A stretch of DNA of 64,000 nt, from positions 139 through 64,138 of the forward strand of contig CDRNVI010000199.1 of assembly GCA_977017575.1 (NCBI GenBank). Direction: 5' to 3'. Under the pieces are notes generated by a model. That model worked only from the letters and a program-made list of their open reading frames with translations, ran no database searches and had not been told where the DNA came from. Source of the DNA: Paramoeba atlantica. Lineage: Eukaryota > Protista > Discosea. The translations under genes and the position numbers were made by a program. Numbering within the stretch: the first letter of the stretch is position 1; each line of letters starts with the position of its first letter. Of the stretch, positions 4,561 to 60,418 are shown one piece after another.

Positions 4561-4575
4561 CCTAGACTCTTAATC
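4561..4575 (-). promoter_or_regulatory. Primer-binding site complementary to the tRNA-Lys(CUU) anticodon arm
   Basis: Minus strand GATTAAGAGTCTAGG directly after the LTR; identical to the first 15 nt of the PBS at 38076. Confidence 0.8.
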
Positions 4576-5143
4576 TGTGAAGTGGCCAGGAGTTTGGAGA
4601 AGGAAAGAGTGGGCAGGTGAAGGAAAGAAGGAAAGGGAAGAAAGGGAAAAGAAAGAAAGAGAAAAGTCAAGAGCAAATCATGGGAAAGATTAGTGCATTG
4701 CAAAGGGAAACCAACCAAGTAAGTTTATTCCTTTTACCAACAAACAAAAGGAGTATTCATATGGAACAATAAATATAACAAGTGTGGAATTGACAAGAAG
4801 CAAAACAGAATGAAAGACAAAAACACACAAGAAAAAGGATGCAGTGGAGAGATTAAATCACAGATAAATGTTACAGAACACAGGATTAATTGACATAAAG
4901 ATTATATAAAATAGAGAAATAAGATGGTGCAAAAATATTAAGGGAATAACTTGATTTCAGAGTGAGAACTGGGTGGAAAGAGCTCAAATGAGAGAGACAA
5001 GAATACATGCAGAATCAAAACAGTTTGTATAGTCTTACAAATGTTCATCAGGGATATTCACACAATAGGGGAGCACAGTGGTGTACAAAGAGAAACAAAT
5101 TAATTTGCACAACATGGAATCAGTTCACACCAGGATTCTGACA
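4576..5143 (-). repeat. 5' LTR of Cp2 (568 bp)
   Basis: TG...CA termini on the minus strand; PBS directly follows its 3' end. Confidence 0.85.
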
Positions 5144-5635
5144 TTTGTTGTTGAAGAAGGAGTTTCCTAAGGGCCAACACCAAAGCTACTTCTGATATCC
5201 ACCAATCCCTTTTCCTTTCTCTTCTTATTCTTCTTCTTTCTGAGTTTAGTTATTGTTTGTTTGTTTGTTTTTTTTTTTTTTTTTTTTTTAAATAACTAAC
5301 TTCCCTCCCTCACTCTCTCTCCTTGCTTGGGTTGTTTTGGCAGCTCTTATAAACTCTTCTGAAATCCTCAGTTGCACTTGTCCATTCAATATTCAGGTTC
5401 AATTTTTTTAACATTAATTTCACCTCCCTTCTATTGTTGGGTTCCTCCACCAATGCATTTTCAATTGGTAAATCTTCTTTGTTGATGAAGACAGGGGCAG
5501 GACCAGAAACAGGTTGACTTCTCCTGTTCTCCTTCTTCTGGATTAAAGAATCAGTGTAATTTCTTGACTCACCTGCAATTTCTTTTGGTTGTGAAGAAGC
5601 AAACTTAACAAAAGAAATTACTGGGTTGGAACTCA
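5144..5635 (-). pseudogene. LINE family B ORF1, C-terminal fragment
   Basis: SSNPVISFVKFASSQPKEIAGES matches NSNPIVFSFKFAFSQPKEIVGKS at 31900-31982; bounded by Cp2 on the left and a CAC-MITE end on the right. Confidence 0.6.
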
Positions 5636-7356: not shown

Positions 7357-8611
7357 GGATTGGGAGAAAGTGATCCTAAAGATGAAGAAAGTTGGAGCAG
7401 CAATCAAAAAAAGGGGTGGCAATTTTCGCTCGAGAGTAAGGATGGTCAATACCTATCTAACTCCATGCATGGGATATTTAGTGAGATTCAAACTGATTCC
7501 AAAATCTGTTGCCTCCTTGATGTGGAAGTCCATCCGCTCAGCTCTGGGTGCCTATGCCAACACAAAAACCTCCATTCTTACCTCATGCTATCCTCCCTTG
7601 GACTCAAACCCCCAACTGCGCCATCCTATTGTTTTTAACTGGGCCCTCCTCACTTCTCGTCCACCAATGAGGAGCGATTATTGGAGTCCTCTTTCCATTG
7701 GAGCCATGCGAAAGGATGCCCTTTTTGCAGCCCAAAGCCTCTCTGCCAAAGTTGTGTTTGGTCAGGCCACTCAAGTTGCTTATTCCAATATGTCTCGAGT
7801 GATCCCCATTGAAATCAAAGATCTGTATGTGGGTGAAGGAAGAGCTGAGTGTGTGGTGTACAACTTGGCACATACAATTAGGCCCCAACTTAAGAGGAAT
7901 TTGATTAAGTTCCTAATAAGAGGGCTGCCTACAAGAGACAAGTTGGCTCACTTCACAAACCAAAACTCAAGTTGCCAACTCTGCCACCATGAAAAGGAGT
8001 CATGATCTCATCTTCTGGAGGAATGTTCTGTGGCTGAGGGCCTCCTCCAAGCAATGGGAAGGAAATGTATTTTGTTGAATGTACCCAGCTGGCAAGAAAC
8101 TAAGAATGTGTGTGGCCTTGTCTCAAATTTTCTCACCAGACAAGAAACCTCTGTGGTGAGTGTTGCCCTGTTGAGTTTGTGGCTCACAGTGTGTGCAGAA
8201 GGATCAAAATCACCCCAGTATGCTACTGAAATCTTCGAAAAAATCTTGAGAAAGAATAAAATCCTCCCTCAGCCCCCAAGAACCCTAACAAAGAAAGGAA
8301 CCAAAGAGAAGGAAAGTTTTAAATTTAAAGGCTTTCAAGTGTTTTATGACGGTTCAGGCTGTACAGACCCTCATCTGGGGGGTGTGGGCTTTGCAGTTTT
8401 CAGGGAAGGGAAAGAGATATGTGGTGGGTTTGAAACCATCCCTCTTGGGTCCAACAATATTGGTGAATTTACAGGCTGTTTGAAAGGAATGCAATGTGCC
8501 AGATCAATGACGAATGAGATTGAAGTTGTTGGGGATTGTATGATTCTCACCAAGGCTGCACCCAAAACCCATGCCATCAAAAACTATGCCTTGAATGAAC
8601 TACTTTGTGAA
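7357..8611 (+). mobile_element. LINE family A copy 1, internal ORF2 fragment (post-RT region, zinc knuckle, RNase H)
   Basis: Near-identical to about 46515-47770; both ends truncated; joins LINE-B at a TGAA microhomology (8608-8611). Confidence 0.9.
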
Positions 8612-9709: not shown

Positions 9710-12700
9710 TTTTTTTTTTTTAAGGTTCAAACACCAGGTGCCATTTATTAGAGTTAAAAACCATCTCTAGGATGGAAAAGAGGGGGGAAGAAAGAGGGGG
9801 GGGAGGGGAGATAAGTTAAGAATTAGATTCAAGGATCTCTTCAGCATGGGATGCATTGGAGTTTCTTTACCAACTTTAGTTCTCACTAAGGGGTCTGCAT
9901 TTGATTGTCTGTCTTCTAAAACCAGGGAGTGAATTCGATTTGGAGGTTTCTATGAAGTTAATTACATTCCTTCAAAAATCTTCTTCGATAAAGCTCCTCA
10001 TCAGATTGCTCTCTTGGGACTGATGGAACCATCCTTGGATATCTTTAGTAATTATTACAGGGAGGATTAGAGCATTCTCAAGAGCAGTTTGGGCCAGAAA
10101 CAAAACATGGGGGGTTGTCACCATGTTTCCTTGGAATTTCCTTACAAAATTTCCTGGGGGGATGGAGAAAGTCCAGTCACAGGTGAGGGGGGAATTGATC
10201 CAGTTCCACAGGGTTGAATTCAAAATAATCCACTCTTCACTGGTTTCTGCAACATGTTGTGATCTTGGATCCCAATGATGGTTATTCACAGCACATGTTC
10301 CATCCTCTTTAGACCAACTTGCAGCAGTTGCAATTGCATCAGCTCGCTTGTTAAGTTTTCAGGGTACATGGATGAATTCTATCTCATCAAAGCACATTGC
10401 TAACTTACAGATTTCACAAAGTAGTTCATTCAAGGCATAGTTTTTGATGGCATGGGTTTTGGGTGCAGCCTTGGTGAGAATCATACAATCCCCAACAACT
10501 TCAATCTCATTCATCATTGATCTGGCACATTGCATTTCTTTTAGACAGCCTGTAAATTCGCCAATATTGTTGGACCCAAGAGAGATGGTTTCAAACCCAC
10601 CACATATCTCTTTCCCTTCCCTGAAAACTGCAAAGCCCACACCCTCTAGATGAGGGTCTGTACAGCCTGAGCCATCATAAAACACTTGAAAGCCTTTAAA
10701 TTTAAAACTTTCCTTCTCTTTGGTTCCTTTCTTTGTTTGAGTTCTTGGGGGCTGAGGGAGGATTTTGTTCTTTCTCAGGATTTTTTTGAAAATTTCAGTA
10801 GCATACTGGGGTGATTTCGATCCTTCCACACACACTGTGAGCCACAAACTCAACAAAGCAACACTCACCACAGAGGTTTCTTGTCTGGTGAGAAAATTTG
10901 AGACAAGGCCACACACATTCTTAGTTTCTTGCCAGCTGGGTACATTCAACAAAATACATTTCCTTCCCATTGCTTGGAGGAGGCCCTCAGCCACAGAACA
11001 TTCCTCCAGAAGATGAGTTCACAACTCCTTTTCTCAGTGGCAGAGTCAGCAACTTGAGTTTTGGTTTGTGAAGTGAGCCAACTTGTCTCTTGTAGGCAGC
11101 CCTCTTATTAGGAATTTAATCAAATTCCTCTTAAGTTGGGGCCTAATTGCATGTGCCAAGTTGTACACCACACACTCAGCTCTTCCTTCACCCACATACA
11201 GATCCTTGATTTCAATGGGGATCACTCGAGACATATTGGAATAAGCAACTCAAGTGGCCTGACCAAACACAACTTTGGCAGAGAGGCTTTGAGCTGCAAA
11301 AAGGGCATCCTTTCACATGGCTCCAATGGAAAGAGGACTTTGATAATCACTCCTCATCAGTGGATGAGAAGTGAGGAGGGCCCAGTTAAAAACAATTGGG
11401 TGGTGCAGTTGGGGGTTTGAGTCCAAAGGAGGATAGCATGAGGTAAGAATGGAGGTTTTTGTGTTGGCATAGGCACCCAGAGCTGAGTGGATGGATTTCC
11501 ACATCAAGGAGGCAACAGATTTTGGAATCAGTTTGAATCTTGCTAAATATCCCATGCATGGAGTTAGATAGGTATTGACCATCCTTACTCTCAAGCAAAA
11601 ATTGCCACCCCTTTTTTTGATTGCTGCTCCAACTTTCTTCATCTTTAAGATCACTTTCTCCCAATCCTTAAGAGGAGATAACCATTTACTTAACTTCACT
11701 CCCAGATATACAGTTTCATCACCACAGTAATTGGACCTTGCCATCTCAGCCCAGGGGCCTACAGGTTTGAAAGACTCAGTTGAGAGGACAAAGCACTTAT
11801 TAAAGTTCAGTTTAGCTCCAGTTGCTTCTTCATATTTCTTGAAGGTTGGAGTGAGAGAATTGATGGTTTCAGCTTTCTGAATCACCATCCCCAAGTCATC
11901 CATAAAGCCTGATAGGTCTTGGGGGTTGTATTTCTTCTTCAAGCTCACCAAGAGGATGTCAAACACAATTACAAACAAAAGGGGGGAGATCAGGCATTCT
12001 TGTCTGACACCAGTTCGACTTTGGATTGATTCATTGTTGCCTCCCCTCTTGGATCCACCAATATTTGGCAGCCAGGTTACAAATTCTTGAAGCACCTTCT
12101 CAACAACATAGATTGCTTGAGGGGGGGTGTTCAAACCTTTGAGAATATGAAGAAGTGCATCATGATTCACATAATCATATGCCTTGCAAAAGTCTGTTTG
12201 GAGGAGGGTCACATCTTTCCCTTCTGCCAGAGCTTTGTAAAAAGAGTCATACACTGATTTCACTGCTTCGTCAATTGACCTCCCCTTAAACATCACATGC
12301 TGTTCTTTAGAAATTACTCCACTTGCAATCTTCATCAGCCATTTTGCCCAATATCTCATCACAATTTGATAATCTGAATTGGTAACACTGATTGGTTGAA
12401 ATTGGTCAGGACGGGGGATATTCTCGACTTTGGGAATCAAACAGAGTTGGCTCTCACCAAAAGAGGGGGGGAACTCCATAATCTCACCCACTTGTTAAAT
12501 TAGTTCCACCCACATGTCAAAATACTTTTTTTGTGTTGCCTTATATAAAGAGAAAGGGATACCATCAGGTCTTGCACTGGTGTTATTGATTCTCTGAAGA
12601 AGTTTATCAACTTTCTTCCTGTCAACATCATGTCTCTCAACTGGGGGAAAGTGAGGATGATGGTCAGCAATCAATTTGTTGAGAGAATCCTTGTTATATG

Positions 12701-15700
12701 GTCTTTCTGTACTGAAAAGGCTCTCCCAAAAGTCTTTAATTGCTTTTTTAACCACATTATCATCATGAGAGATCACTCCATCTACAATTACACCTTTAAC
12801 ACAGGGAAAAGATTTACAACCAGGGTGCAAGGGGTGTTCATCCACAAAAATTCTGAGTTGTTGTTCAAAAACTACAATTCAATCCATCTCAGCTTTGATC
12901 ATTTTAGGAATAGCTTTGATTCTCCATTTCTTATCATCTTGAGAGCCATTCCATCCTATTGCAGCTGTATGAAGGAGTTTGAGTTCCAACGAAGAGAATG
13001 AGTGTATAGCTGAAGTTTTCTTTAAAATCCTGGTCTTTGCAAGGTGTTTGATGATTGTCTGGAGTTTCCATAGTTCTTTGAAAAGGTGAGCTTTTTTCCC
13101 TTTATCTTTCCACAGAGGAATTAATTCCCACACCTTCTCTTTGAATTTAATAAGACAACTAACAGGATCACCTTCCACATAGTCCCCAACTTCATTAATG
13201 AGGGCATTAATAAATTTAGAATCTTTAATGAGGTATTCAGGGATTCTCTTCTTGTTAGATTTCAACTTCCATTCTTTGATACTAGTTCCACCTATGATCA
13301 TCGCATGGTCCTTAAAGCCTGAAGGGATCGCATTGACAAAAATTCTTTCACTAGGAGTGTTTGAGGGAATAAAGACATGATCAATACATCATCCTTGGAA
13401 ATGGGTTGGTTCTGACCACCCTAGTTTTGATAAATTCCAAGATTCAGAGGATTCTACAAGCTCTTTAAAAAGGGGTTCATTAAGATCCTAGTTGAAGTTA
13501 CCTCCCAGAACATTCAGTCCATCTTTGGAGAAGAACTTTCTGATTTGGTCTTACATAAAGGGAAGTTTCAGATCACAATGATGGTAAACATTCATTACAG
13601 CATATTCAGTATTGAAAATCTTGGTTCTCAGTCCAAACAAACCACTCTCAGAGCTTTCAATTGGGTATGGTTCTATATCATAAAGGCCTTCCATTCTTCT
13701 AACTCTAATGGCAAGGCCCTGCTTCTGTTTTGAGAAGGAGTTTTTGAACCACAAATATTTCCTCAAACAATTCTTGAGATGATCAAGATCTTTTTCAGAT
13801 GTGACATGGGTTTCTTGGAGCAAAATAAACAGAGGACAGCAACTTGCAGCCATTTTACAGTAAAGGTTGAGTTTTTCATCATTATGAACACCATTGATGT
13901 TTTATGATAAAATCCTCATGTCTGGAAATTTGTTATACTGATACAGGTTTGGAAGCAGAGGTGCAGGGAAGGGAGGAAGGAAAGAAGATGAAGGGGGTTG
14001 GGACCCCAAGACAGATGCTTGAGGGGTTGGAGAGGCAAGGTTTGTTTTTTGATGAAGATCAATAACAGAAGAGTCAGAGAAAGCACAAGGGTCCTTCAGT
14101 GGTGGAAAGAAAGATTTTAAATTGTTGTTGTTTTTCTTTCCTTTCATTCTTTCCTTTATGAGGGGGAGGAAGAAGAGGAGGATGAAACATTGCTTGACTC
14201 AGGAAATTGAGCACTATCTATTGTCAACACTGTCTCACCCCATTCTATTTGATGCAAATCTCCAAAAACTGCAAAACCGTTTGAGGCAGGGATCTCCAAA
14301 AAAGGATAAGTCGCTTTTTCCTTTCTGGGGACACCAGTGGGGACACTCTTATCACAGTCATTTTCCTTTGTTTTTTCCTCTTCATCTTTCTCTTCTTCTA
14401 TCTCCTCTTTCCCTTTCTTCTCTTCCCTACTTTTCTTTTTCTTCTTCTTTGCTGGCTTCTTGATTACAGGTAATGGTTTGGTCCCAGTAGAAGTTGGTTC
14501 CTTCTCTTCAATTGTCTCTTCTAACACTACCCTCTTCTTCAGTCTGGATTTTGGCTTTAATTTCAGTTCCTCAACCACCTGATCAATAATGTGGCCAAGA
14601 AAGTCTGCATCAAAACTCGATTCCCATTTAAGCTATCCTTTTTCCAACTTGCTCTTCAACTTCCCAAGGCTATCTTCAGTCCTCTCCCACTCACACTGGA
14701 AATTCACCCCATCTAATATTTTTCAAGCCCCTTCAGTGTTATGAATAGTCATTGACCATTTGCTCCCAGAAATTGGATCAGATGAGAATTGAGGTCTGTT
14801 CACATCTGGGGAAATCTCATCCTCATCCTGAATTAAAATAACCCCCCTTTCAGTGTCAGTTTCAGCAACAATGTCTTCAAGGAAATCCATCATATCTTTT
14901 TGAGGGATTGTTGGGGTTTCTGATGTACTGCCTGAGTGAGATGATGTGGCTGGAGTTTGGGAGGGTGATTCCTTACAAGGCTTAGTAGTCTTAAGCAAAT
15001 ATTTGGGTTGGTTACTTCTTGAAGGGGCTGATTTTTCCTTGGAGAAACTTTCTCAAAGAGCAGTTTCCCTCATGTTTGTGCTTTGATCAATCTCCATCAA
15101 GGTTGTAGATGAGAGACAAGGGTCAGCAGACTTCATTGGGAGTGGTGCCCTCTGATTGGGATTTGGTAATATGGGAAATTGGGACAGAGAGAGATTTGTG
15201 CCTTGGTTCCCTTGATTTGTCAAGGACTCTGTAGGAATAATAAATCTTTTATGTGATTGTTCCCTCAATTTTGTGATTGTCACAGGACAGGAAGGAAATT
15301 TCCTCCAAGAGTCTGTCTCATTATTTAACTTTTTGATGATTCCTCCCTCTCCCTCCTTGTCCACAATCTCCTTCGCACATTTTAAATGTCTTGAGTGTGA
15401 AATCTCACACACTTGACAATTTACTTTCTCATGAAAAGGACTCATAGGGGTTCACAGAGAGATCCTACCTTGAAACTCATTGTTAATAATAAAAGAACCT
15501 CTGTGCTTAGCAATAATACATGTCAGAATAAGAGGGATTACATCATAGAAGATGACAATACAATCATCGCTGATCTGAGCCACCTCTCTTAATCTATGGT
15601 GAGGAAGAGCAGATTCACCAATAAACAATCTTTGGATCCACTCTTCCCCTTTGATTAAAAAGGGGACACAGAGTTTAAAGCCCCATAAATTCCAATCTTG

Positions 15701-16285
15701 GTTGTTCTTCCAGATAAAGGGCTTCCCAAAACCAGTTGCAAGGAAGGAACCATTTTTCAGAATGACTTTCTCCAGGGGTTTGTGCATTTTTTTGTCAAAG
15801 GTGACCACGTTGAGGTGGCCTTTCATAACACACAAGAGGAAGTTCCCTCTCAGCTTAGGGACTTTGTTGAGTGTGGCCATTGCTCTCTGATAGTTTGGCA
15901 TTCCTTCATAGAAACAAAAGGAACCCATTACAAAGATGGGATGGATTATTGCATTGTTCTTCATAAAGTTAACCTCAGTTCCAATATGGGACAAGGTTTT
16001 CAGTATTTCTTTCTTGACTTGCAACCACCATCCTTCCTCAGGCGCTCTCTTCGAGGTTGATTTGATTGGAATTTCTTCAGAATTCCCACTTGGGTTTGTG
16101 TTTTTTTGTTCATTCTTCAAATACAAGGGGGAGTGGGACCCATTCTGGGAGCCTTTAGAGGAAGAGGACTTACTCTTTCCACTGAACATAACAAATTTCT
16201 CTGAAGTGCTCAACTAGGCAGGGTTTCACCAACACAGCAGGTGAAGGAAAGAAAATCAGATTGGGCAAGGAAAGTCTCCTTGAAC
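9710..16285 (-). mobile_element. LINE family A copy 2, near full length
   Basis: Poly(A) tail 9710-9721 with AATAAA upstream; ORF2 9876-14147; ORF1 14156-16189; 5' end a few nt short. No TSD: flanks are LINE-B (3') and a transposase gene (5'). Confidence 0.95.
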
Positions 16286-18843: not shown

Positions 18844-19342
18844 AAAAAGTTGAGGATAAATTCCCTTGGAAGGAGCTTTGGATTATAGTATGGAGTGGTG
18901 CATTTCTACTACTAATACAAACAGAACAAGGAAACAAATTGGTTTAAATCTCCTAAATTTACTATGATATCTACAACTTCTGCTCAAAGCACAACAAAAG
19001 CAATACAAACCAAATTCATGATGAAACACAAATTTGGGCAAAACAAAATGCTCCCTAATTGGGAAAACGCAGAGGAAACAACAAAACTACATCAAATTGA
19101 GAAGCATCTTCAAGAGTCAAAACACTCTTACAACCTGACAATTATTCTCTCTTCTGATGTGCATCCTCCAGCCTGAACTTGCAGAAGTTCTAAAGTTCAG
19201 CATAAAGACCAACTGAACTAAGCTGAAGTTTAAAACTTCACCTCTCATTAGAGGTTAAAAACAAACATAATTTAATGTAATTCAAATGGCTTAGATTAAA
19301 AACTACTAATTGAATAAAGTTTGTCTTAAAAAGAAAAAAAAA
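18844..19342 (+). mobile_element. SINE copy 4 (5' part lost; interrupted by a solo LTR)
   Basis: 18844-18886 and 19141-19342 match the SINE body at about 28460-28706; ends AATAAAGTTTGTCTTAAAAAGAAAAAAAAA. Confidence 0.8.
18887..19140 (-). repeat. Solo LTR of Gypsy family G2 (254 bp)
   Basis: Flanked by the 5-bp duplication ATTAT (18882-18886, 19141-19145); minus-strand ends TGTCAGG...CCATACT; homologous to 28911-29133. Confidence 0.8.
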
Positions 19343-19945
19343 ATCAACTTATTGATGTACTTGTAACCACCATTAGAGTTAAACAAGTAAGACATCATCT
19401 TGATCCACATATCATAGTTTGTCTCAGTTAACTTTAGTACTTTCACAACTGTTTTGTTCATTATGATACTACAGTGGTAGAGACACTAAACTCTTAATCT
19501 AACAAATGGAAAAATGGTGCAGAGATGAAACTGAGAAATAAACTCAGAAATTAAATCAGAGAAAAACAAAAGTGAAAGCTTTATTTTGACTTTGATACTT
19601 AGCACTAACTATTCACAAAATGCAGAGGGCAAAGGACTAAGTCACCAAGTTCACCAAAAGAAAGAATGGAAGTTTGGGAACTGAATCAGCAATTTGTCAA
19701 AAGGGAGAAATGGATCAAAAGAGTGACATCATCATTAAAACAAAAAGACCACAAGCAAGCTTTAAGCTATTGCCAATTAACAATCAATCTTCTCTTTCTT
19801 CCACTGGGTTTCATTTACAGAAACTTTCTCTTCTTCACATCAAATATGATTATCCCTAAAGGAACTTATTTTTCAAAAGAGAAAAACTAAATAAACACCT
19901 TCAACTGAGACTTTTAATTCCTTAGCATCATTTCAATTGAGTACA
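19343..19945 (-). mobile_element. Ty1/Copia remnant (family Cp4): probable 5' LTR, PBS and gag start
   Basis: PBS at 19476-19499; downstream VLKLTETNYDMWIKMMSYLFNSNGGYKYI fits the Copia gag N-terminal L-x-x-x-NY-x-x-W pattern. LTR start at 19945 (TGTAC) is a best guess. Confidence 0.6.
19476..19499 (-). promoter_or_regulatory. Primer-binding site complementary to the tRNA-Lys(CUU) D/anticodon arm
   Basis: Minus strand GATTAAGAGTTTAGTGTCTCTACC; its complement GGTAGAG(A)CACTAAACTCTTAATC is tRNA-Lys-like. Confidence 0.7.
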
Positions 19946-21921: not shown

Positions 21922-24900
21922 TGTTGGGTTGTCATAGTTGGTTTTGTTGACTTTGTTGTTTTGTTGGTGAGTGGAAACACTGAACTATTTTGTGTGTGTT
22001 TTCCGATTGTGAATAATTGTAAATTATTTGTTGCTCTTTTTTGTACAAAAGAGGTTTTGTTCTTTAGACCCATTTGTGGGTGAAAGAGTGTAAACTTTCT
22101 TTTGTTTTTTTTGGCTTTTGGAACACATTTGATAAAAGACATTGAACCAAGCTTGTTCTTTCTTTATTCTTTGTTTTTGTTCTCTGTTCTTGTCTCTATT
22201 TCCATACTATTCTGTAGAGGACTCAACTTTTTTTTGGTCTTTTCCTTGTGTGCATTGAATTTAATCAGTTGTAAATCCATTTTTTTTTAGAAAACTTTTT
22301 CTCTATGGAGTCAGCAAAGGAGGAGGCCCATGAGATGCCCCTTAGTTTGGAACAAGAGGATCAAGATGCAGAAAGTGAAATTGAATGGATGTCATCATCT
22401 GAGTTGTTGTTATCAGTCTTGTCAGGGTCACTGGAGTCTGAGGTTGTCCAGCGTTATGACAAACTAAGAAAACTTGAACTCACATTAATGGATTAGGTGA
22501 TTAATCTCAATCTAGATAAGGGTGAGTTTCATGAAGAGGCCATTGTGAGTTTGCAGAAGCAAATTTCTATGATCCAAGTTATGTTGAAGCTCTTAAAACA
22601 AATGTTGGCTTGTGAGACAAAATTTGAGACATCAGAACCTGAGTACTCAGACATAAGAAGTTGAGTAGGACCTTCAGGTGTTCCAGGGAATTTGAGAATT
22701 CTTGGAAGAAGAATGATAAAGTTGGAAGAGAAGGAAGTCACTTCTTCAATTGAGTTGGAATCAGATTATCATGTGATGAAGAGGGAGCAGTCTGTGTCAG
22801 ATTGTTCTTCCTCGAGTGGGAGTGATTCAAGGAGGCGAGCCAGAATACCAAGGGGAGTAGCTAATCCTTCAGTTGGTTTGTTTGAATCATCCACAGGCTC
22901 AGGAGATTGGTTAAAGAAACTTGACAATCTACCAAAATTAAAAACCCCAACAAAGGATGTTGTGAAAGTCCTTGAGTTTCAGTTTTCGTTTAAGATTTTG
23001 ATGAAAGCTGAAGGTTTGCAAGAGGGAGTGCAGAAGAAGTATCTCTTGTGGGCAGTATCTGGAACAATGAAGTCTGATTTTGTACAGTCAGATACCTTGG
23101 ATTGGACAGTGAACCAGATGTTTAAGTTTTTGAAAAAATCGAATTTGGGAGCCAACTTCAGTCAGAAGGTGGAAGAACTCTTGGGTTCGGTGGTTCAGGA
23201 GGAGTCAGAATGTATAAAGAAATTTGCAAAGTGACTCTCTTGGTTTCTGTTGGAGCTTTGGTTGGATTTGAATTCAAAAGAAGCAAAATTAAAGCTCTGA
23301 GAGAATTCTTGCACAGAATATAAATTACTTTGGGTGAGGAATTTTGGTCAAGCATTTGAGCATGACCAGGAGGTTCATTGAAGAGTTTTAGTGGACCATG
23401 CCTTTGAGGTTGAAGACACAGACCAGTTTGTTTTGTTGAAGGAGGATGCAAAGATGCTAAAGAAAAAGGCAACTTGTGTGTTTTGTAAGAAAACTGGCCA
23501 TTTGGAAAGTCAGTGTTACAAGAAGAAACCATCACCTTCATTGACGTCTTCAAACGAGAATGGGAACAAGAGTGCAAAGGAGAAAAAAATTTCTTGGAAA
23601 GAGATCAAAAGAAAAAATTTGTGTATCAAATGTTTGCAACCTGGTCACAAGAAGAAAGACTGTCCTGAATGCTCGACTCCCAAAGATGGTTGTTTTCTGC
23701 TACCAGAGGAAGGAGCCAGTGTTGATGCCAGTGCTTCATCTTCAATGGAAGAAGACAAGATGTATAAACAATTTTTGAGAGATGTTAATTCACCTCTCAG
23801 TGTGAGTGAGGAGAATGCTCTTGGCCCAATTTCACCACCTCCAGATTCGATGAAATTGTATGTTCTGATTACATGGGGTGATTCGAAATCACTGGATATT
23901 TAGACTATCTATGATTCAGCAGTTACGGTGACAATGGCTGATTCAAGATTATGGGATCAGTTGGAAGGTGAAGAAGGTCAAGGGAAGCATTGGTCTGGTG
24001 GCATTGGTGCTGCAGTACAGACACTTACTTGTTTTAAGATGGTTGCTGCATATACTTTGTTTTATGCAACTGTAGTTAAGGTTTGGAGAAATCCAGCCTT
24101 GACTGGTAATTGTTTGTTGATTCATCATGAAGATGCAAAGCAGTTGGGGGTGACTGTTCAAGGAATCGAAGTGGTCTTCCCAAGTATTGCTTGTCAAGTC
24201 CAAGTTGATGATCGGCAGTGGTTGGATAATGATGAGGATTAGAGTCAAGAGGAGCAATGGGATGATGAGTCAGTCAAGTTGTTTATTCAAAGTATTGATG
24301 ATGCTTTGAAGGAAAACCAGAGACTGTAGGAAAATTCTCATTGTGTGCTCCCAGGTTCTGAGTTTAAAATTTCTTTGAAAGAAGACACTCTGAAGTTTGT
24401 GCCACAGTATCCAATCCCTGAGAAATTGAAAAGAAAGGTTATGGAGTGAGTGAACAAGTGGGTGAAAAAAGGATTTGTTAAGAAGTGGGACAAGGATGAA
24501 AAGAACTTGTGGAATTCCCCTCTTTTAGCAGTCCCTAAGAAGTCTGGTGGTCAGGTGGATCCTGATGATATCAGAGTTTGTTTGGATTTGAGAGTGGTAA
24601 ATGCTTTAACAAAGGATCCAAGTAATATTTTGCCATCTCCTGCAGAATTGTTTGAACGTGTTTGGGGTGCGAAATATTTTACCGAAATCGATCTCATGGA
24701 GGCTTATCATCATATTGTGGTGTCAGAAAAGAGTCAGCCATTGTTGGGTTTTCTGGCACCTGATAAGAGTCAGTATGTGTATGTGAGGATGCCATTTGGG
24801 CTGAAAGGTGTGGTTATGCATTTTCAAGTCCAAGGAGAATGAGTTATTGGTGTTTCAGATGAAGCTGCAAGTTATTTGGATAATTTTCTAGTTTTTTCTA

Positions 24901-27488
24901 AAGAGCTGGAAAATCATTCTAATGAAGCTTACAGAGTCATCTGAAAGTTGATGAGAGCAGGATTTTAGATTAAGATGAAGAAATCAAAATTCTGCATAAA
25001 GAGGATTCAATTCATGGGTCATTTGATTAATGGTTTTACTTGAAAGATTGATTCATTCAAGAAAAAAATGGCTCAGAAGATGGTGAAACCTCAGACTGGA
25101 AAGCAAGTTGAAAGTCTTCTTGGTTTGCTGAATTTTTTGAGGGATTTTGTCCTAAATTATGTGACTATTGCAGCTCTGTTGGACAAGTTGCGAAAGATGA
25201 GGTGTCTTGGTAAGGCGTGGGGCAAGGAGCAAGACAAGTCTTTTGATTTTTTCAAAGAGGTTATCTTGAATGCTCCAGTGTTGTCTCAGCCAGATTGGGA
25301 TCAAGAATTTCATATTGCAACTGATGCTTCACAATATGCAGTTGGTGTGGTATTGTACCAAGTTGATGCAAATGACAAGAAATGTTATATTGTATTTGCA
25401 TCGAAAACTCTTCAAGCGGGGCAACGAAATTATCCTGCACCGAAGAGGAAACTTTTGGCAATTATTTTTGCAATTAGGAAGTTCCGTTCATATGTTTTTG
25501 GGCAGAAGTTTAGAGTGGAGACGGATCATAAGGCACTTGTGTATTTGAATTCAAGTACAAAGTTTATGATTTTGGACTGGTTGGATTTTCTGTTGGATTA
25601 CAACTTCTACATTGTTTATCAAAAAGGGATCCATAATGTTTTACCAGACTATCTCTCTTGATTGTATCAAGAAAAATACCCAGTTACAGATGATTCTACT
25701 GAACCAGCAATTGATGCTTGCAATGTTGCTGTGCTTGAGTGTGAGGATGAGCCTGTTGAAGGAACTAAGAGATATCTTGAAGAGTTTATTGGGAATGTAC
25801 TTGGTAAGAAAGAACTGGAGGAAGAAGAGAAACTGCCTTTGGTGAAAGAAAAGCATGAGGAAAGTCATGCTGGTGTTTCAGGAACAGTTTGGAAACTATT
25901 TAGTGCAGGTTACTACTGGCCATCAATGAGAAGGATGGTAATTATGGTCTGTTGAGGTTGTGTGGTGTGTTTGAAATACAATCATGGGAGAATTGGATTT
26001 CATCCGATTACCCCAGTTACTTCAGTGCTGCCTATGGATATAATTGGTATGGATTTTATTTGTAGGTTGTCTGAGTCAAATGAGGGCTATACAATTGTCC
26101 TTATTGTAATAGATATTGCAAGTTGTTTTGTGATACTGTGTAAATTAATCTCCAAGGAAGCAGAGTCAGTTGCAGAAGCTTTGCTATCTGTTTTTGCAAA
26201 TTTTGGTGTCCTAAAGGAGATTCAAAGTGATCAAGACCCATTGTTTTTCAACAAAGTTATGGAGGCTTTTCGTAATGCTTCAACTGCAAAATTGAGAAAG
26301 GTGATGAGATATTACCCTGCTCAAAATGGTGCAGTTGAGAGATATGTGAGAGAAGTTTTGGGTTTGGTTGTAAAATTGCTGGAAGGAGATATGACAAATT
26401 GGGTGAAATTTTTGCCAGTTGTTCAAATGTCATTGAATGATCACTATATCTTGAGACATAAGTTTACTCCCTTTGTGGTAATGTTCGTGAGAGAGAGGAA
26501 CCAAGCAGCAAATTATGAGGGGTTGGAATTGGAAGTTGCAACTCCTGAAAAATTGTTAGAGAGAAATCAGAAGATGGTCTATTTGGTTTATCTAGCACTT
26601 GCAAAATTATCCAAAGAAGTGGGTAAGAAAGGTTGTGATGATGTGAATGAAATGAAATGGAAAAAAAGATCTTTGTGACCTAAACCTCTGGCAATTGGCA
26701 CTTCAGTTATGAAAGAAGTGGATAAAAGAACTACAAAATGGCAGCAATGCTGGGAAGGCCCTTTTTGTATTGCTAAATATAACAATGAGATGAAAGGTTA
26801 TTTGCTGGAATGTATTGATGGGAAAGTTCTTGAAGCAGAAGTTCCTATTGCATGATTGAAAGTGATTCTAGGAGAAATGAATTTATCTAATATCTATGAA
26901 TTTGAGAAAATTTTGGATGATTGGGGCAAAGATGGTGAGAAGGAGTACCTTGTCAAATGGAAATATTATGATGAGACATCTTGGCAACCTGTGAGTGATT
27001 TTTTGGCAGATGATGTGATTCAAGAATACAATGCAAAGTGGAGAAAATCGACACAGCATGTAAAAAAGAAATGAGGAACTATTTCTGTTGTGATGCTTGT
27101 TGTGTTGGTTGTTTTGTTCTTTTTGTTTTGTTTTGTTTTTATTGTGTGTTGTGAATTGCGAGCAAGTGCACTTGCGGGGGGTGTTGAGTTGTTATAGTTG
27201 GTTTTGTTGACTTTGTTGTTTTGTTGGTGAGCAAAAACACTGAACTATTTTGTGTGTGTTTTCCAATTGTGAATAATTGTAAATTATTTGTTGCTCTTTT
27301 TTGTACAAAAGAGGTTTTGTTCTTTGGACCCATTTGTGGGTGAAAGAGTGTAAACTTTCTTTTGTTCTTTTTAGCTTTTGGAATGCATTTGATAAAAGAC
27401 ATTGAACCAAACTTGTTCTTTTTTTGTTCTTTGTTCTTGTTCTCTGTTCTTGTCTCTATCTCCATACTATTCTATAAAGAACTCAACT
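21922..27488 (+). mobile_element. Ty3/Gypsy chromovirus-type LTR retrotransposon G1, structurally complete, decayed
   Basis: 307-bp LTRs 21922-22228 and 27182-27488; TSD GTTAG/GTTGG; PPT GCGGGGG before the 3' LTR; T7 after the 5' LTR. Confidence 0.93.
22305..27074 (+). pseudogene. G1 gag-pol: two CCHC knuckles, protease, RT, RNase H, integrase, chromodomain
   Basis: CVFCKKTGHLESQC, CIKCLQPGHKKKDC; IYDSAV; WNSPLLAVPKK, RVCLDLRVVN, YVRMPFGL, YLDN; IATDASQYAVG, ETDHKAL; HEESHAG, YYWPSM, GMDF, SDQDPLF, QNGAVER, WEGPF; chromodomain YEFEKILDD...EYLVKWKYYDETSWQP (about 26892-27045). Multiple stops and frameshifts. Confidence 0.92.
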
Positions 27489-28284
27489 GTTGGCACTTAT
27501 AGTTTAGTTGTAAATTCAACTATGTTTAACCTCAGGGGGGCAAGTTCAAATCCCAGTTTTTCAATATTTTAGAAAATTTTTTTGGTGCTGTAGAGTGATT
27601 TGATTGAAGTGAAGAGCTTTTGAAAAAGTGTGAAAATCAAAACAGATTACATCTCAGCCTTATCTGCTAAAAAGTTGAAAATAAATTTCTTTGGAAGGAA
27701 TTTTGGATTATTCTCCCTTTTGATGTGTATTCTCCAGCCTGAACTTGCAAAAGTTCTAAAGTTCAGCATAAAGACCAACTAAACTAAGCTGAAGTTTAAA
27801 ACTTCACCTCTTGTTAAAGGTTAAAAACAAACATAATTTAATGTAATTCAAATGGCTTAGATTAAGAACTACTAATTGAATAAAGTTTGCTTCAAAAAGA
27901 AAAAAAATGAAGATGATAATGTTGTGGAAGGAAAAAAAAGAACTTGTTTTGTTGATTGATTCAAATAAAAAGAAATTTCTTATTGTAAATTCATTTAATA
28001 ATAAAAAAGTGAAAAGAAATACAAATTTTTTTTCTTCAAAAAATACCTCAAAACTTACTCTCAAACACTCTTTTCAACCTTTTTTTCAGTTCTAAAGAGG
28101 AAAAACAAAACAAAAAACCATTGGTAGCTTTGTTTTTCAGTGGTCAAAAAAAAAACATAAAAAAGCACTTTTTTTTTGATGATTAATTTTTTTTTTGTTT
28201 TTTTTTTAACATTGAAATTATTTTTTCAACAATCAATATTTTTATTGTTTTTTTTGACCATTGAAATTATTTTTTCAATGGTTG

Positions 28285-28706
28285 GGGTTGGTGCTTGTAG
28301 TTTAGTTGTAAATTCAACTATATTCAATCTTGGGGAGCAAGTTCAAATTCCAGTTTTTTAATATTTTAGAAAATTTTTTTGGTATTGTAGAGTGATTTGA
28401 TTGAAGTGAGGAGCTTTTAAAGAAGTGTGAAAATTGGAACAAGTTACATCTTAGCCTTGTTTGCTAAAAAGTTGAGGATAAATTCTCTTAAAAGGAGCTT
28501 TAAATTATTCTCCCTTCTGATGTGCATCCTCTAGCTTGAACTTGCAGAAGTTCTAAAGTTTAGTATAAAGACTGACTGAACTAAGCTGAAGTTTAAAACT
28601 TCATTTTTCATTAAAGGTTAAAAACAAACATAATTTAATGTAATTTAAATAATTTAGATTAAAAACTATTAATTGAATAAAGTTTACTTCAAAAAGAAAA
28701 AAAAAA
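28285..28706 (+). mobile_element. SINE copy 2, full length (about 420 bp), tRNA-like head
   Basis: A-box-like TAGTTTAGTTG, B-box-like AGTTCAAATTCC, 3' AATAAA plus A tail; 17-bp TSD TATTTTTTCAATG(G/A)TTG at 28268-28284 and 28707-28723; empty site near 6322-6338. Confidence 0.85.
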
Positions 28707-29133
28707 TATTTTTTCAATGATTGATGTTTTTCTTGGTTTTTTTTGATGGTTGAAAGTTTGGACAATGGAAGAAAGTCAAGTTGAGGTTGTTTGTGAGTTG
28801 AGGTGGGCAATGACATCAGTTAACTTTCAGGGTGTTGAAACCTTTCCAACAGTTCAATTCAAACCCACAAATTGCCCTGACTGCAAGTGCAGCTTGAGCC
28901 CACCTCTGTGTGAGTGGTGCATCTAAAATTGTTTATTTAAATTTCCTAAATTTACTATGATTTCTACAACTTCTGCTCAAAGCACAACAAAAGCAATACA
29001 AACCAAATTTATAATAAAACACAAATTTGAACAAAACAAAACACTCTCTAATTAGGGAAATGTAGAGGAAACAACAAAACAATACCAAATTGAGAAGCAT
29101 CTTCAAGAGTTGAAACACTCTTATTACCTGATA

Positions 29134-29915
29134 TCCTATAAATTGAAATTTGTTGATAACATTCTTTCTGAGTTGTGCATCCTGTACAAAAGACCTTTCT
29201 TGCTCCAATTTGATTCTGAACCTATAATAGCTATTGCAAAAATACCCCATGTGAACCAAAAAACTAAGCAAATTGAAGCCTTTGACTATTACACAAGAAA
29301 AGCATTGCAAAATAGCTTGATTGAGTTGGATTATGTGCTCACTAAAGATAACTTTGCTGATATTTTTACAAAACCCCTTAGATTCAATGTGTTTACACTT
29401 CACCAAAACAATTTTATTCATTCCTGTTGCTCTGCAAATTAACTTCATGATGGAAGGGAGTGTTAGAATATCAGTATTCTTAATTTGTAGAATGTTTAAT
29501 TTAATGGAAAACATCATTTGTGAATTCTATAATCACAAGTTATGCTATCTTAAAGCACCTCATCTTCCTCTTTTGAATAGTGCTAATTCCATCTGAATCT
29601 AACAACTACACATCATAATATTGATCAATCATTGAATTGTGCCTTCAAGAATACCTTTGCCCTATTTCAAACGCAATTTGATTGCATAGTTTATTCTCCA
29701 TATTCTAATCTTTCAGCTTATGAATTTATTTGTGCTGATGTCATCTGTTGTTCCCTTCCTTAAACTTGTTGTGTCTTTGTGTCTCTTATGTGTACTTTTA
29801 TTTGTGTGTGTTTTTCTGCTTTTGCACTTGGTATCACATTGACAAATATGTGCTTGAAACCTGTTCATAAATAAACATGTGAGAGACTTTGTTTTTTCAT
29901 GTTTCTGGCTCTTGC
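29134..29915 (+). mobile_element. Ty1/Copia 3' remnant (family Cp3): RNase H C-terminus, PPT, start of 3' LTR
   Basis: FDSEPIIAIAKIPHVNQKTKQIE...KDNFADIFTKPL; PPT GGAAGGGAG (29452-29460) then TGTTAG at 29461. Right boundary approximate. Confidence 0.85.
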
Positions 29916-31895: not shown

Positions 31896-31899
31896 AAAA

Positions 31900-33565: not shown

Positions 33566-33601
<36 letters not shown>
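31900..33601 (-). mobile_element. LINE family B, 5' part (A tract, 5' UTR, ORF1)
   Basis: ORF1 from an ATG near 33482; CIVLFYTQIPINLVQLIAHTK...VSVWTPVRPFDTVVKCPTCQINHLACLNC aligns with family A CIVIFYDVIPLILTCIIAKHR...ISLWTPMSPFHEKVNCQVCEISHSRHLKC; A34 tract at 33568-33601. Confidence 0.75.
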
Positions 33602-33604
<3 letters not shown>

Positions 33605-33770
33605 ATCCTCATTCAACCAAAAGACAAACAAATCAAAAGAGAGACCACAGGAGTGAACATGTGGATATAATATCAGATTTTTTTTTAAAAGACTCAAAAG
33701 GAATATTTGAAGTTACTTCAACTCTAAAAAACACCATAATTGTAAGTGCAGCTTAAGCTCACCTCCATAT
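33602..33770. mobile_element. Family E copy 3, left-end fragment (inverted)
   Basis: Reverse complement of the first about 170 bp of family E including the TIR (33742-33770). Confidence 0.75.
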
Positions 33771-33818
33771 GTTAGCATCAATTTCAACAACAATATCTTT
33801 GAGAAAGTCCATCATATC
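33771..33818 (-). pseudogene. Short old LINE-A ORF1 remnant serving as the target of LINE-A copy 3
   Basis: GATATGATGGACTTTCTCAAAGATATTGTTGTTGAAATTGATGC resembles ORF1 DMMDFLEDIVAETDA. Confidence 0.65.
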
Positions 33819-36800
33819 TTTTTTTTTTTTAAATTCAGACACCAGGTGCCATTTATTAGAGTTAAAAAACCATCTCTAGGATGGAAAAGAGGGGGGAAGA
33901 AAGGGGGGGGGGAGGGAAGATAAATTAAGAGTTAGATCCAAAGATCTCTTCAGCATGGAATGCATTGGAGTTTCTTTACCAACTTTAGTTTTCACTAAGG
34001 GGTCTGTGTTTGATTGTCTGCCTTCTAAAACCAGGGAGTGAGTTCGGTTTGAAGGTTTCTATGAAGTTAATTACATTCCTTCGAAAATCTTCCTCAATAA
34101 AGCTCCTCACCAGATTGCTCTCTTGGAACTGATGGAACCATCCTTGGATATCTTTAGTAATTATTACAGGGAGGATTAGAGCATTCTCAAGAGCAGTTTG
34201 GGCTGGAAACAAAACATGGGGGGTTGTCACTGTATTTCCTTGGAATTTCCTTACAAAATTCCCTGGGGGGATGGGGAAAGTCCAGTCATGGGTGAGGGGG
34301 GAATTGATCCAGTTTCACAGGGTTGAATTCAGAATAATCCACTCTTCACTGGTTTCTGCAACATGTTGTGATCTTGGATCCCAATGATGGTCATTCACAG
34401 CACATGTTCCATCCTCTTTAGACCAACTTGCAGTTGCAATTGCATCAGCTCACTTGTTAAGTTCTCGGGGTACATGGATGAATTCTATCTTGTCAAAGCA
34501 CATTGCTAACTTACGGATTTCACAAAGTAGTTCATTCAAGGCATAGTTTTTGATGGCATGGGTTTTGGGTGCAGCCTTGGTGAGAATCATACAATCCCCA
34601 ACAACTTCAATCTCATTCATCATTGATCTGGCGCATTGCATTCCTTTCAAACAGCCTGTAAATTCACCAATATTGTTGGACCCAAGAGGGATGGTTTCAA
34701 ACCCACCACATATCTCTTTCCCTTCCCTGAAAACTGCAAAGCCCACACCCCCCAGATGAGGGTCTGTACGGCCTGAACTGTCATAAAACACTTGAAAGCC
34801 TTTAAATTTAAAACTTTCCTTCTCTTTAGTTCCTTTCTTTGTTTGGGTTCTTGGGGGCTGAGGGAGGATTTTGTTCTTTCTCAAGATTTTTTCGAAAATT
34901 TCAGTAGCATACTGGGGTGATTTTGATCCTTCTGCACACACTGTGAGCCACAAACTCAACAGGGCAACACTCACCACTGAGGTTTCTTGTCTGGTGAGAA
35001 AATTTGAGACAAGGCCGCACACATTCTTAGTTTCTTGCCAGCTGGGTACATTCAACAAAATACATTTCCTTCCCATTGCTTGGAGGAGGCCCTCAGCCAC
35101 AGAACATTCCTCCAGAAGATGAGATCGTGACTCCTTTTCATGGTGGCAGAGTCGGCAACTTGAGTTTTGGTTTGTGAAGTGAGCCAACTTGTCTCTTGTA
35201 GGCAGCCCTCTTATTAGGAACTTAATCAAATTCCTCTTAAGTTGGGGCCTAATTGCATGTGCCAAGTTGTACACCACACACTCAGCTCTTCCTTCACCCA
35301 CATACAGATCCTTGATTTCAATGGGGATCACTTGAGACATATTGGAATAAGCAACTCAAGTGGCCTGACCAAACACAACTTTGGCAGAGAGGCTTTGGGC
35401 TGCAAAAAGGGCATCCTTTCACATGGCTCCAATGGAAAGAGGGCTCTGATAATCGCTCCTCATTGGTGGACGAGAAGTGAGGAGGGCCCAATTAAAAACG
35501 ATTGGATGGTGCAGTTGGGGGTTTGAGTCCAAGGGAGGATAGCATGAGGTAAGAATGGAGGTTTTTGTGTTGGCATAAGCACCCAGAGCTGAGCAGATGG
35601 ATTTCCACATCAAGGAGGCAACAGATTTTGGAATCAGTTTGAATCTCACTAAATATCCCATGCATGGAGTTAGATAGGTATTGACCATCCTTACTCTTGA
35701 GCGAAAATTACTACCTCTTTTTTTGATTGCTGCTCCAACTTTCTTCATCTTTAGGATCACTTTCTCCCAATCCTTAAGAGGAGATAACCGTTTACTCAAC
35801 CTCACTCCCAGATATACAGTTTCATCACCACAGTAATTGGATCTTGCCATCTCAGCCCAGGGGCCTACAGGTTTGAAAGACTCAGTTGAGAGAACAAAGC
35901 ACTTATTAAAATTCAGTTTAGCTCCAGTCGCTTTTTCATATTTCTTGAAGGTTGGAGTGAGAGAATTGATGGTTTCAGCTTTCTGGATCACCATTCCCAA
36001 GTCATCCATAAAGCCTGATAGGTCTTGGGGGTTGTGTTCCTTCTTCAGGCTCACCAGGAGGATGTCAAACACAATTACAAAAAGAAGGGGGGAGATTGGG
36101 CATCCTTATCTGACACCAGTTTGACTTTGGATTGATTCATTGTTGCCTCCCCTCTTGGATCCACCAATATTCAGCAGCCAGGTTACAGATTCTCAAAGCA
36201 CCTTCTCAACAACATAGATTGCTTGAGGGGGGGCATTCAAACCTTTGAGAATATGAAGAAGTGCATCACGATTCACATAATCATATGCCTTGCAAAAGTC
36301 TGTTTGGAGGAGGGTCACGTCTTTCCCTTGCCAGAGCTTCATAAAAAGAGTCATACACTGTTTCCACTGCCTTGTCAATTGACCTCCCCTTAAACATCGC
36401 ATGCTGTTCTTTAGAAATTACTCCACTTGCAATCTCCATCAGCCATTTTGCCCAATATCTCATCACAATTCGATAATCTGAATTGGTAACACTGATTGGT
36501 CGAAATTGGTCAGGGTGGGGGATATTCTTGACTTTGGGAATCAAACAGAGTTGGCTCTCACCAAAAGAGGGGGGGAACTCCATCATCTCACCCGCTTGTT
36601 GAATTAATTCCACCCACATGTCAAAATACTTTTCTTGTGTTGCCTTATATAAAGAGAAAGGGATACCATCAGGTCCTGCGCTGGTGTTATTGGTTCTCTG
36701 AAGAAGTTTATCAACTTTCTTCCTGTCAACATCATGTCTCTCAACTGGGGGAAAGTGAGGATGATGGTCAGCAATCAATTCGTCAAGAGAATCCTTGTTA

Positions 36801-38075
36801 TATGGTCTTTCTGTACTGAGAAGGCTCTCCCAAAAGTCCTTAATTGCTTTTTTTACCACATTATCATCACGAGAGATCACTCCATCTACAATTACACCTT
36901 TAACACAGGGAGAGGATTTATGACCAGGGTGTGAGGGGTGTTCATCCACAAAAATTCCGAGTTGTTGTTCAAGAATTGCAGTTCAATCCATCCCAGCTTT
37001 GATCATTCTAGGAATAGCTTTGATTCTCCATTTCTTGTCATCTTGAGAGCCATTCCATCCTATCGCAGCTGTATGAAGAAGTTCAAGTTCCAACGAAGAA
37101 AAAGAGTGTATGGTTGAAGTTTTCCTTAAAATCCTGGTTTTTGCAAGGCGTTTGATGATTGTCTGAAGTTTCCATAGTTCTTTGAAAAGGTGAGCTTCTT
37201 TCCCTTTGTCGTTCCACAGAGGAACTAATTCCCATGCCTTCTCCTTGAGTTTAATAAGACAACTGACAGGATCACCTTCCACATAGTCCCCAACTTCATT
37301 AATGAGGGCATTAATAAATTTAGGATCTTTAATGAGGTATTCAGGGATTCTCTTCTTGTTAGATTTCAACTCCCATTCTTTGATACTAGTTCCACCTATG
37401 ATCATCGCATGGTCCTTAAAGCCTGAAGGGATCGCATTAACAAAAATCCTTTCACTAGGAGCGTTCAAGGGAATAAAGACATGATTGATACATTGTCCTT
37501 GGAAATGGGTTGGTTCAGACCACCCCAGTCTTGATAGATTCTGTTACAATCCTGTTGGCTCTTGTGTTTTCCATTTGGAGCCATTCTCACTCCCTCTTCT
37601 GCCAAACAACTGATCTCTCTCTCCCTGTTCTCCCTGATTGACACTCTCTCTCTTCCCTCTCTTTTCCTTCTTCTCTTTTTTCTCTCTTTCTCTTCTTTCC
37701 CTTCCTCTTCTCTCATCCTTCCTCCCTCCTTCTCTCTCTTTCCTCTTTCCTTCCTTTCCCTTTTCTTTTTCCCCTTTTCTCACTTTTCCTCCCCTCTCTT
37801 TTCTCCTGTCTTTTTCCTTTTCTCTGTGCTTTTCAGAATGTTGATTCATGAATGATCCACCTGTGTTCTATTGCAGTTATCTGCCACTAAAACGCTCTTT
37901 TCATGCCATTTTCACTGTCTTTCTCTCCTTTGTTTTGTGTTGTTTTCCCCCCTTTTTCTCTGCTGTCACAAATCATTTGTTCCCCCTTTTCTGTTTGTTG
38001 ATACAAATAAATCATTCTCTTCAGTTCCTTTGTTGTATTTTTCTTGTCCCCCTCCTTCTTCCCCTTGGCCACACA

Positions 38076-38098
38076 GATTAAGAGTCTAGGGCTCTGCC
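38076..38098 (+). promoter_or_regulatory. Primer-binding site complementary to tRNA-Lys(CUU) positions about 18-40
   Basis: GATTAAGAGTCTAGGGCTCTGCC directly after the LTR; complement GGCAGAGC-C-CTAGA-CTCTTAA-TC reads as D-arm end, anticodon stem, CUU loop, first two 3' stem bases. Confidence 0.85.
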
Positions 38099-44026: not shown

Positions 44027-44034
44027 AGGAAAGA

Positions 44035-50455: not shown

Positions 50456-50491
50456 CACCCTCCTCAATTTGGAGCCATTTGAACAACAAGC

Positions 50492-60387: not shown

Positions 60388-60418
<31 letters not shown>

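Follow-up and report, generated by a model that had tools for sequence, protein, structure and literature searches.

By which primer do the long terminal repeat (LTR) retrotransposons in a 64-kb stretch of Paramoeba atlantica DNA (contig CDRNVI010000199.1; the whole stretch is hereafter called the window) start their reverse transcription? The question was raised by a first-pass annotation of the window, in which three elements, here designated A, B and C, were described as Copia families carrying the motif GATTAAGAGT(C/T)TAG directly past the 5' LTR, and in which the 5' half of tRNA-Lys(CUU) was proposed as their primer. The observation proved to be essentially right and the interpretation right in kind. 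Based on the results presented below, the Ty1/Copia elements of this genome and their non-autonomous derivatives most probably prime minus-strand synthesis in the style of the genus Hemivirus, using a 5' fragment of the host tRNA-Lys(CUU) that ends in the anticodon stem.

In total, three occurrences of the motif were found in the window, compared with 0.09 expected by chance. Its 14-nucleotide (nt) core, GATTAAGAGTYTAG, lies at positions 4562–4575 (minus strand), 19486–19499 (minus strand) and 38076–38089 (plus strand). The expected count was obtained from dinucleotide-preserving shuffles (n = 100), and a count of three was reached in 0 out of 100 of these. In elements A and C, as well as in two further families, F2 and F4, the motif begins at the very first base past the terminal CA of the LTR. 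Both the enrichment and the placement of the motif are real for A and C. At site B, by contrast, no LTR could be demonstrated and the motif is not preceded by the usual CA, and the earlier statement that the motif directly follows a 5' LTR therefore stands for two of the three sites. The LTR bodies of A and C have only low-complexity matches in common and are unrelated, as had been claimed. The description of all three elements as Copia families stood for C alone, which encodes a Copia polyprotein (protease–integrase (PR-INT) through to the RVT_2 domain), whereas A is a non-autonomous element without coding capacity and B is a fragment. No conventional primer-binding site (PBS) of the 3'-end type was found within 150 nt of the site, in agreement with the reported lack of a TGG-type PBS.

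The 14-nt core is the exact complement of nt 27–40 of tRNA-Lys(CUU), a stretch that reads CTAGACTCTTAATC in the tRNA. The complement of the core, CTAGA-CTCTTAA-TC, represents a 5-bp stem strand, a 7-nt loop (U33, anticodon CUU, A37) and the first two bases of the 3' stem strand; U33 together with a purine at position 37 is given by one register of the core only. A scan of Joint Genome Institute (JGI) metagenomes for this anticodon arm and a T loop yielded at least 120 loci with at least 87–92 distinct genes, both archaeal-type and eukaryote-type, and ARAGORN called tRNA-Lys(ctt) for those tested among the scanned genes with exactly this arm. The complementarity to tRNA-Lys(CUU) up to about nt 40 was thereby corroborated. 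The longer complement given in the first-pass annotation, GG(T/C)AGAGC-N-CTAGA-CTCTTAA-TC, fits C exactly and B with one extra base and CTAAA, but its D-arm part does not hold for A. In C, the 9 nt past the core resemble the complement of nt 26–18. Local alignment of the family leaders with one eukaryote-type tRNA gene (locus L049) gave scores of 29–39, versus 11–12 ± 2 for shuffled sequences (shuffle maximum, 23). As would be expected of Hemivirus-type half-tRNA priming, the PBS adjoins the 5' LTR and complements an internal stretch of the tRNA that stops within the anticodon stem, instead of the 3' CCA end.

The close protein relatives of C all originate from one ENA assembly (ERZ24900291), which represents the same or a very close genome, since its repeats are 85–96% identical to those of the window. 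Among the window and the ERZ24900291 loci, the site is present in 12 copies belonging to at least six families (C, 2; A, 3; F2, 4; F3, 1; F4, 1; B, 1), and it is located after a terminal CA in all of them save B. The PR-INT regions of the families are 41–67% identical to each other, and their LTR bodies are unrelated, with the sole exception of F3 and F4 (78%). LTRs of the TG..CA type and 5-bp target duplications were observed in C, A (in locus L130), F2 and F4 (TTATC/TTGTC in the latter), and purine tracts precede the 3' LTR in A, F2 and F4. The F2 copy in locus L006, the LTRs of which are 99% identical and which was therefore inserted recently, is flanked by the target duplication GAATG and has its coding region in five open reading frame (ORF) pieces; in locus L002, an F2 LTR is interrupted by one piece of a ~420-bp repeat resembling a short interspersed nuclear element (SINE). 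Locus L130 contains a single 928-aa ORF with the domain order rve, SH3_retrovirus, RVT_2. In decayed copies, the expected transition changes are seen inside the site. An invariant site beside unrelated LTRs argues for a host-encoded partner. The Copia "radiation" suggested earlier is larger than stated, as it comprises at least six families in this genome and two distant intact relatives elsewhere.

The distant relatives were obtained in a full HMMER search, in which the 928-aa integrase–reverse transcriptase (RT) ORF of L130 served as the query. Two informative full-length relatives from different JGI samples, P0111 (L132; 37% identity, the best full-length match) and P0119 (L133; 33%), have intact polyproteins on contigs of 5–6 kb and carry the same 14 bases past the CA of the LTR. 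In L132, the LTR end ...TCTCCA is followed by a single A and the core, and the tRNA match runs on to nt 15 with an extra base as in B; in L133, ...CCCA is followed by the core and almost immediately by the start codon. The site is invariant while the proteins have diverged to ~35% identity. In a quick maximum-likelihood tree, from which the rows for C, F2 and L127 were dropped at the coverage filter, the RT of the window genome, L132, L133 and four JGI proteins formed one clade (Shimodaira–Hasegawa-like approximate likelihood ratio test, SH-aLRT, 100), from which the remaining 74 representatives, among them named proteins of plants, animals, algae and fungi, were separated. Searches with the Copia integrase, the Copia RT and the LINE RT, like the full HMMER search, revealed no named protein that was closely related. 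No fungal protein was found among the 20 best HMMER matches whose names were looked up, and a scan of IMG/VR for an LTR-CA followed by the PBS gave no match. A classical Copia in L127 (JGI 3300063414), with an RT ~30% identical to those of the families described here, carries the usual TGGTATCAGAGC site, a PBS for the 3' end of initiator methionine tRNA (tRNA-iMet); this PBS belongs to the neighboring Copia of ~30% identity and not to the 40%-identical relative that is also present in L127. A tRNA-Leu gene is located in L127 as well. A more distant Copia relative was detected on a 671-kb contig (L129; ENA ERZ25067893), with animal-type domains (BESS, HTH_animal, Harbinger DDE and GIY-YIG) nearby; L127 and L129 both belong to other hosts.

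According to the proposed mechanism, nt 27–40 of the host tRNA-Lys(CUU), i.e., the 5' strand of the anticodon stem, the whole loop and two bases of the 3' strand, would pair with the PBS. By analogy with copia and Ty5, the anticodon stem would be cleaved behind nt 40 (behind nt 41 in L132) to create the 3'-OH of a 5' tRNA fragment, and the RT would extend this end into U5; the LTR edge would then fall exactly at the primer end. Such a mechanism is suggested by the position and complementarity of the site together with the precedent of copia and Ty5. We infer a tRNA fragment rather than the whole tRNA as the primer, the position, timing and enzyme of the cut, and a host tRNA-Lys(CUU) having this anticodon arm. 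Several observations weigh against such priming. Among the at least 87 tRNA-Lys(CTT) genes with this arm that were listed, nt 26 is A, G or T, and never C; the 15th base of the site, which is G in five families, therefore forms no Watson–Crick pair, and the perfect site is 14 nt long (nt 27–40). The extension of the match beyond the core into the D arm, which is clear in B and L132 (p ~0.001) and marginal in F2 and F4 (p 0.06–0.07), does not reach significance in C, F3 and A, and L133 shows no such extension. No tRNA was found by ARAGORN or Rfam in the window and loci L001–L006, L130 and L131 (~200 kb), so that the genes matched are tRNA-Lys(CTT) genes from other organisms. Finally, fragment B lacks both an LTR and the usual CA before the motif.

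The sequence data are silent on when, or whether, the tRNA is cut, and the complementarity in B and L132 covers far more of the tRNA 5' half than would be required for a primer site of 14 nt. A whole tRNA-Lys(CUU) might accordingly anneal by its anticodon arm without acting as a primer, e.g., as a packaging or chaperone ligand, or might become the primer only after cleavage inside the particle instead of being drawn from a pre-existing pool of tRNA halves, as suggested in the first-pass annotation. These possibilities appear unlikely when taken together. Against them stand the position of the site, which adjoins the LTR edge exactly where the primer 3' end must define U5, the absence of any other primer site, and the precedent of cleaved primers in copia and Ty5 (as cited in PMC10886601).

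That the perfect match spans just 14 nt, and that the host tRNA was not seen in ~200 kb, would also suit a cis-acting signal conserved in this Copia clade, for instance one for dimerisation or packaging, the likeness of which to the tRNA-Lys anticodon arm is coincidental. Such a coincidence is very improbable, given that the match respects the architecture of the tRNA (7-nt loop, U33, CUU anticodon, A37 and 5-bp stem strand), continues into the D arm in B and L132 and occupies the position of a PBS, and that the same reading was made independently for the fungal FunCo1 elements. Self-priming, in which the 5' end of the transcript folds onto the site and is cleaved to give the primer, is known in Tf1/Sushi and has been proposed for some plant Copia elements (PMC6317226). 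It would call for a PBS complementary to the start of the element's own transcript. In all six families, however, exact complements of the site in the 600 nt upstream either do not exceed 6 nt or are missing, and the LTR contains none of 7 nt or more; an invariant site accompanied by unrelated LTRs is, moreover, the opposite of what self-priming predicts. Since no complement longer than 6 nt exists in these 600 nt, Tf1-type priming can be set aside as extremely improbable.

The assignment of fragment B needs to be considered on its own. Its motif has one C-to-T difference, and an ATG located 24 nt downstream of the motif opens a Copia-gag-like stretch, for which the match to Pfam DUF4219 reaches only E = 0.15; the reading frame is not resumed past the SINE piece at 19140–19344. 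No LTR pair was found for B, and the window and ~140 kb of sister contigs contain the region 19345–21615 only once. A tRNA gene at site B was ruled out, as an Rfam search that admitted E values of up to 10 still gave no tRNA at this site. Taken alone, site B might not be a PBS and might instead be what is left of a tRNA-Lys pseudogene, or a SINE head of tRNA origin: the tRNA 5' half is matched over ~30 nt, neither an LTR nor a terminal CA is present, and tRNA-derived SINEs are abundant in the same genome. Nevertheless, the tRNA match ends at nt 42 with no T arm, the Rfam search was empty, the ATG and the Copia-gag-like start are found on the strand that a PBS predicts, and the intact Copia of L132 shares this extended form, extra base included, all of which makes a pseudogene or SINE head quite unlikely. 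In the place where the LTR of B would be expected, a CCHC zinc knuckle and a decayed second knuckle, belonging to the gag of another retroelement, are located (20380–20560, minus strand).

As a tentative possibility, which we consider rather doubtful, the window elements, L132 and L133 may belong to a deeply branching Copia clade, separate from FunCo1 and so far encountered only in environmental sequences, in which priming by half of tRNA-Lys(CUU) is ancestral and the 5' leaders retain a more or less complete copy of the greater part of the tRNA 5' half (to nt 12–15 in B and L132). If so, this footprint would be derived from plus-strand strong-stop synthesis proceeding far into the primer, and modified bases would be marked by the mismatches and indels that recur at nt 26, at nt 20 and in the D loop; alternatively, it would represent functional extended pairing between the tRNA and the genome, like the extra boxes of Ty1. 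The longer footprint seen in B and L132 may have either of these origins.

The primer type itself is already described, because a PBS reading ATTAAGAGTCT and matching an internal region of tRNA-Lys was reported for the fungal FunCo1 clade by Donnart et al. in 2017 (PMC5445492); the question of whether the variant was known, which the first-pass annotation had left unanswered, is answered in the affirmative. The fungal species in which FunCo1 was detected number 270, nearly all of them Pezizomycotina, and the FunCo1 PBS is dealt with in one sentence of that paper, in which the primer end and a D-arm extension are not discussed (PMC5445492). The 11-base PBS of FunCo1 lies inside the 14-nt core of the elements described here. 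In contrast to FunCo1, the nearest relatives of these elements are metagenome proteins, the comparison with FunCo1 being one of the published PBS, and the genome shows CpG decay instead of mutations of the repeat-induced point mutation (RIP) type. Literal motif searches of the literature revealed no further relevant paper beyond Donnart et al. 2017.

Half-tRNA priming with other tRNAs is likewise documented. Hemivirus is set apart by the International Committee on Taxonomy of Viruses through the use of a short tRNA segment (PMC8515867), and plant surveys list half of tRNA-Met for Osser, Bryco and Gymco-II and half of tRNA-Ile for Bianca (PMC6317226). As in the elements described here, the Copia PBS of Drosophila copia, yeast Ty5, Volvox Osser and plant Bryco/Gymco-II pairs with the anticodon stem-loop region (PMC8515867, PMC6317226, PMC10886601). 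The primer 3' end falls in the 3' strand of the anticodon stem, at about nt 39–40, in those elements, as it would here, but the tRNA is the initiator Met tRNA there and the elongator Lys(CUU) here. The cleavage position of the copia primer tRNA was reportedly described by Kikuchi et al. in 1986. A tRNA-Arg fragment serves as the primer of Candida Tca2. Besides this Arg case, half-tRNA priming has been documented for Met, Ile, Tyr, Asp and Asn tRNAs (PMC6317226, PMC10886601), and Copia families of Puccinia, together with their Helenus terminal-repeat retrotransposons in miniature (TRIMs), use anticodon loops, namely those of tRNA-Tyr, Ile, Asp, Asn and iMet (PMC10886601). Judging by Tca2, Bianca and the Puccinia Copia/Helenus elements, half-tRNA priming in Copia has switched tRNA species repeatedly, and none of these uses Lys. 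The Helenus TRIMs resemble element A in that a non-autonomous partner shares the PBS of an autonomous Copia. Classical Copia elements, such as the one in L127, belong to the same superfamily and have the same domain order, but prime with the 3' CCA end of an intact tRNA.

The elements described here are a further example and not a new mechanism, and the known picture of half-tRNA priming is unchanged. The present case contributes one more host and clade, a measure of how deep the conservation goes, a non-autonomous partner, a definition of the putative primer end and the D-arm footprint. An apparently CpG-methylating host and environmental relatives thereby join the short list of Copia lineages that would use a tRNA-Lys(CUU) 5' fragment. 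Lineages of LTR retroelements are marked by the tRNA that they choose as primer, and this choice is also a point where host small RNAs can interfere. The recent F2 copy, the intact L132 and L133 and the non-autonomous partner provide a system for studying how the primer is cut.

Of the three, element C is the one true Copia (Table 1). It has the Ty1/Copia domain order gag-PR-INT-RT-RNase H with an RVT_2-type RT, which is found neither in A (no ORFs) nor in B (a fragment). Searches with the polyprotein of C were run on its individual ORF pieces, and those upstream of RVT_2 matched Pfam Retrotran_gag_2, Pol_BBD, gag_pre-integrs and SH3_retrovirus. The host site of C is a minus-strand copy of a long interspersed nuclear element (LINE), the halves of which (33818–37541 and 51021–53882) contain the duplicated bases in their overlap. 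At the rearranged 3' end of C, its own polypurine tract is not evident. The inverted extra LTR located there has its own purine tract and, together with a 36-bp spacer (50456–50491) and the 3' LTR, constitutes a 1.1-kb near-palindrome; this rearrangement is unexplained. No gag or pol was found in the 4-kb interior of element A, which is therefore non-autonomous; its primer site and LTR termini are common with the Copia families. A complete copy of A, with both LTRs and the 5-bp target duplication AAAAA, is present in L130.

Table 1. Positions in the window of elements A and C, fragment B and the F2 fragment.
Feature	Position	Strand	Remarks
Element A, 3' LTR	1–519	−	Cut by window start; preceded by purine tract GGAAGGGTG
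Element A, interior	520–4560	−	T-rich on element strand; no gag or pol
Element A, PBS (putative)	4561–4575	−	14-nt core at 4562–4575
Element A, 5' LTR (TGTCAG...CTTCACA)	4576–5143	−	
Fragment B, gag-like start	19345–19461	−	39 codons; cut off by SINE piece 19140–19344
Fragment B, tRNA-Lys(CUU) complement	19462–19499	−	~nt 12 to nt 40 (up to 42); two transition differences, one extra base
Fourth Copia family F2, 3' fragment (RNase H end + LTR)	29101–29915	+	Same PBS in the full copies (L001, L002, L003 and L006)
Element C, left target-site duplication	37537–37541	+	5 bp, GATTC; LINE halves split by C overlap by these bases
Element C, 5' LTR (TGTTAC...CACACA)	37542–38075	+	~95% identical to 50492–51020
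Element C, PBS (putative)	38076–38098	+	14-nt core (38076–38089) complements tRNA-Lys(CUU) nt 40–27
Element C, gag-PR-INT	38205–41896	+	Single frame; five in-frame TGA stops (38469, 38781, 39255, 40662, 41517)
LINE inserted in C	41897–48473	+	6.6 kb; APE, RT, RNase H, poly(A) tail; does not belong to the Copia
Element C, RT-RNase H (RVT_2)	48474–49873	+	Two in-frame TGA stops
Additional C-family LTR copy	49927–50455	−	Inverted; 36 bp from 3' LTR
Element C, 3' LTR	50492–51020	+	Right target duplication at 51021–51025

All seven in-frame stops of C are TGA, the two in the RT-RNase H part being located at 48806 and 49871. A variant genetic code with TGA as a sense codon was ruled out, since sister copies have sense codons at these positions and differ by CpG-type transitions on either strand. 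CpG sites differ in 63% of the pairwise comparisons of repeat copies, compared with 4–6% in other contexts; transitions outnumber transversions ~15:1 among repeat copies, and the observed-to-expected ratios of CpG and TpA in the window are 0.14 and 0.43, respectively. RIP was ruled out as well, because TpA is depleted and not enriched. The pattern points to heavy decay of methylated CpG, which would account for all seven stops of C being TGA. In L003 and L004, the recorded gene products are not reproduced by translation table 11, with one call containing 8 stops; these genes were presumably called under another code owing to the many TGA stops.

The window is AT-rich (23–44% G+C). At 60256–61500 (23% G+C), long T-rich microsatellite-like tracts with units such as T(n)G dominate the output of the repeat finder. 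One LINE family, with APE, RT, weak zf-RVT, an RVT_3-type RNase H and a poly(A) tail, is represented by the split copy at 33818–37541 and 51021–53882 (minus strand) and by those at 41897–48473 (plus strand) and 9710–16285 (minus strand), so that C is nested inside one copy and another copy of the same family is nested inside C. The abundant ~420-bp repeat occurs at 27489–27907, 28287–28704 and 53891–54265 (minus strand) and partially at 19140–19344, with many copies in L001–L004; its head resembles a tRNA (A-box and B-box-like, ...GTTCAAATCCC) and its tail is A-rich, so that a SINE of tRNA origin is probable. Another tRNA-like sequence, with the T arm GGTTCAAATCC, for which ARAGORN calls no tRNA, was found in L005 (~7795–7885, minus strand) and may be another SINE head. 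The sole host gene seen is an ankyrin-repeat gene. A Ty3/Gypsy element is located at 21921–27488 (plus strand), with LTRs at 21921–22228 and 27181–27488 that are 94% identical, and contains zf-CCHC, RVT_1, RT_RNaseH_2 and rve in this order.

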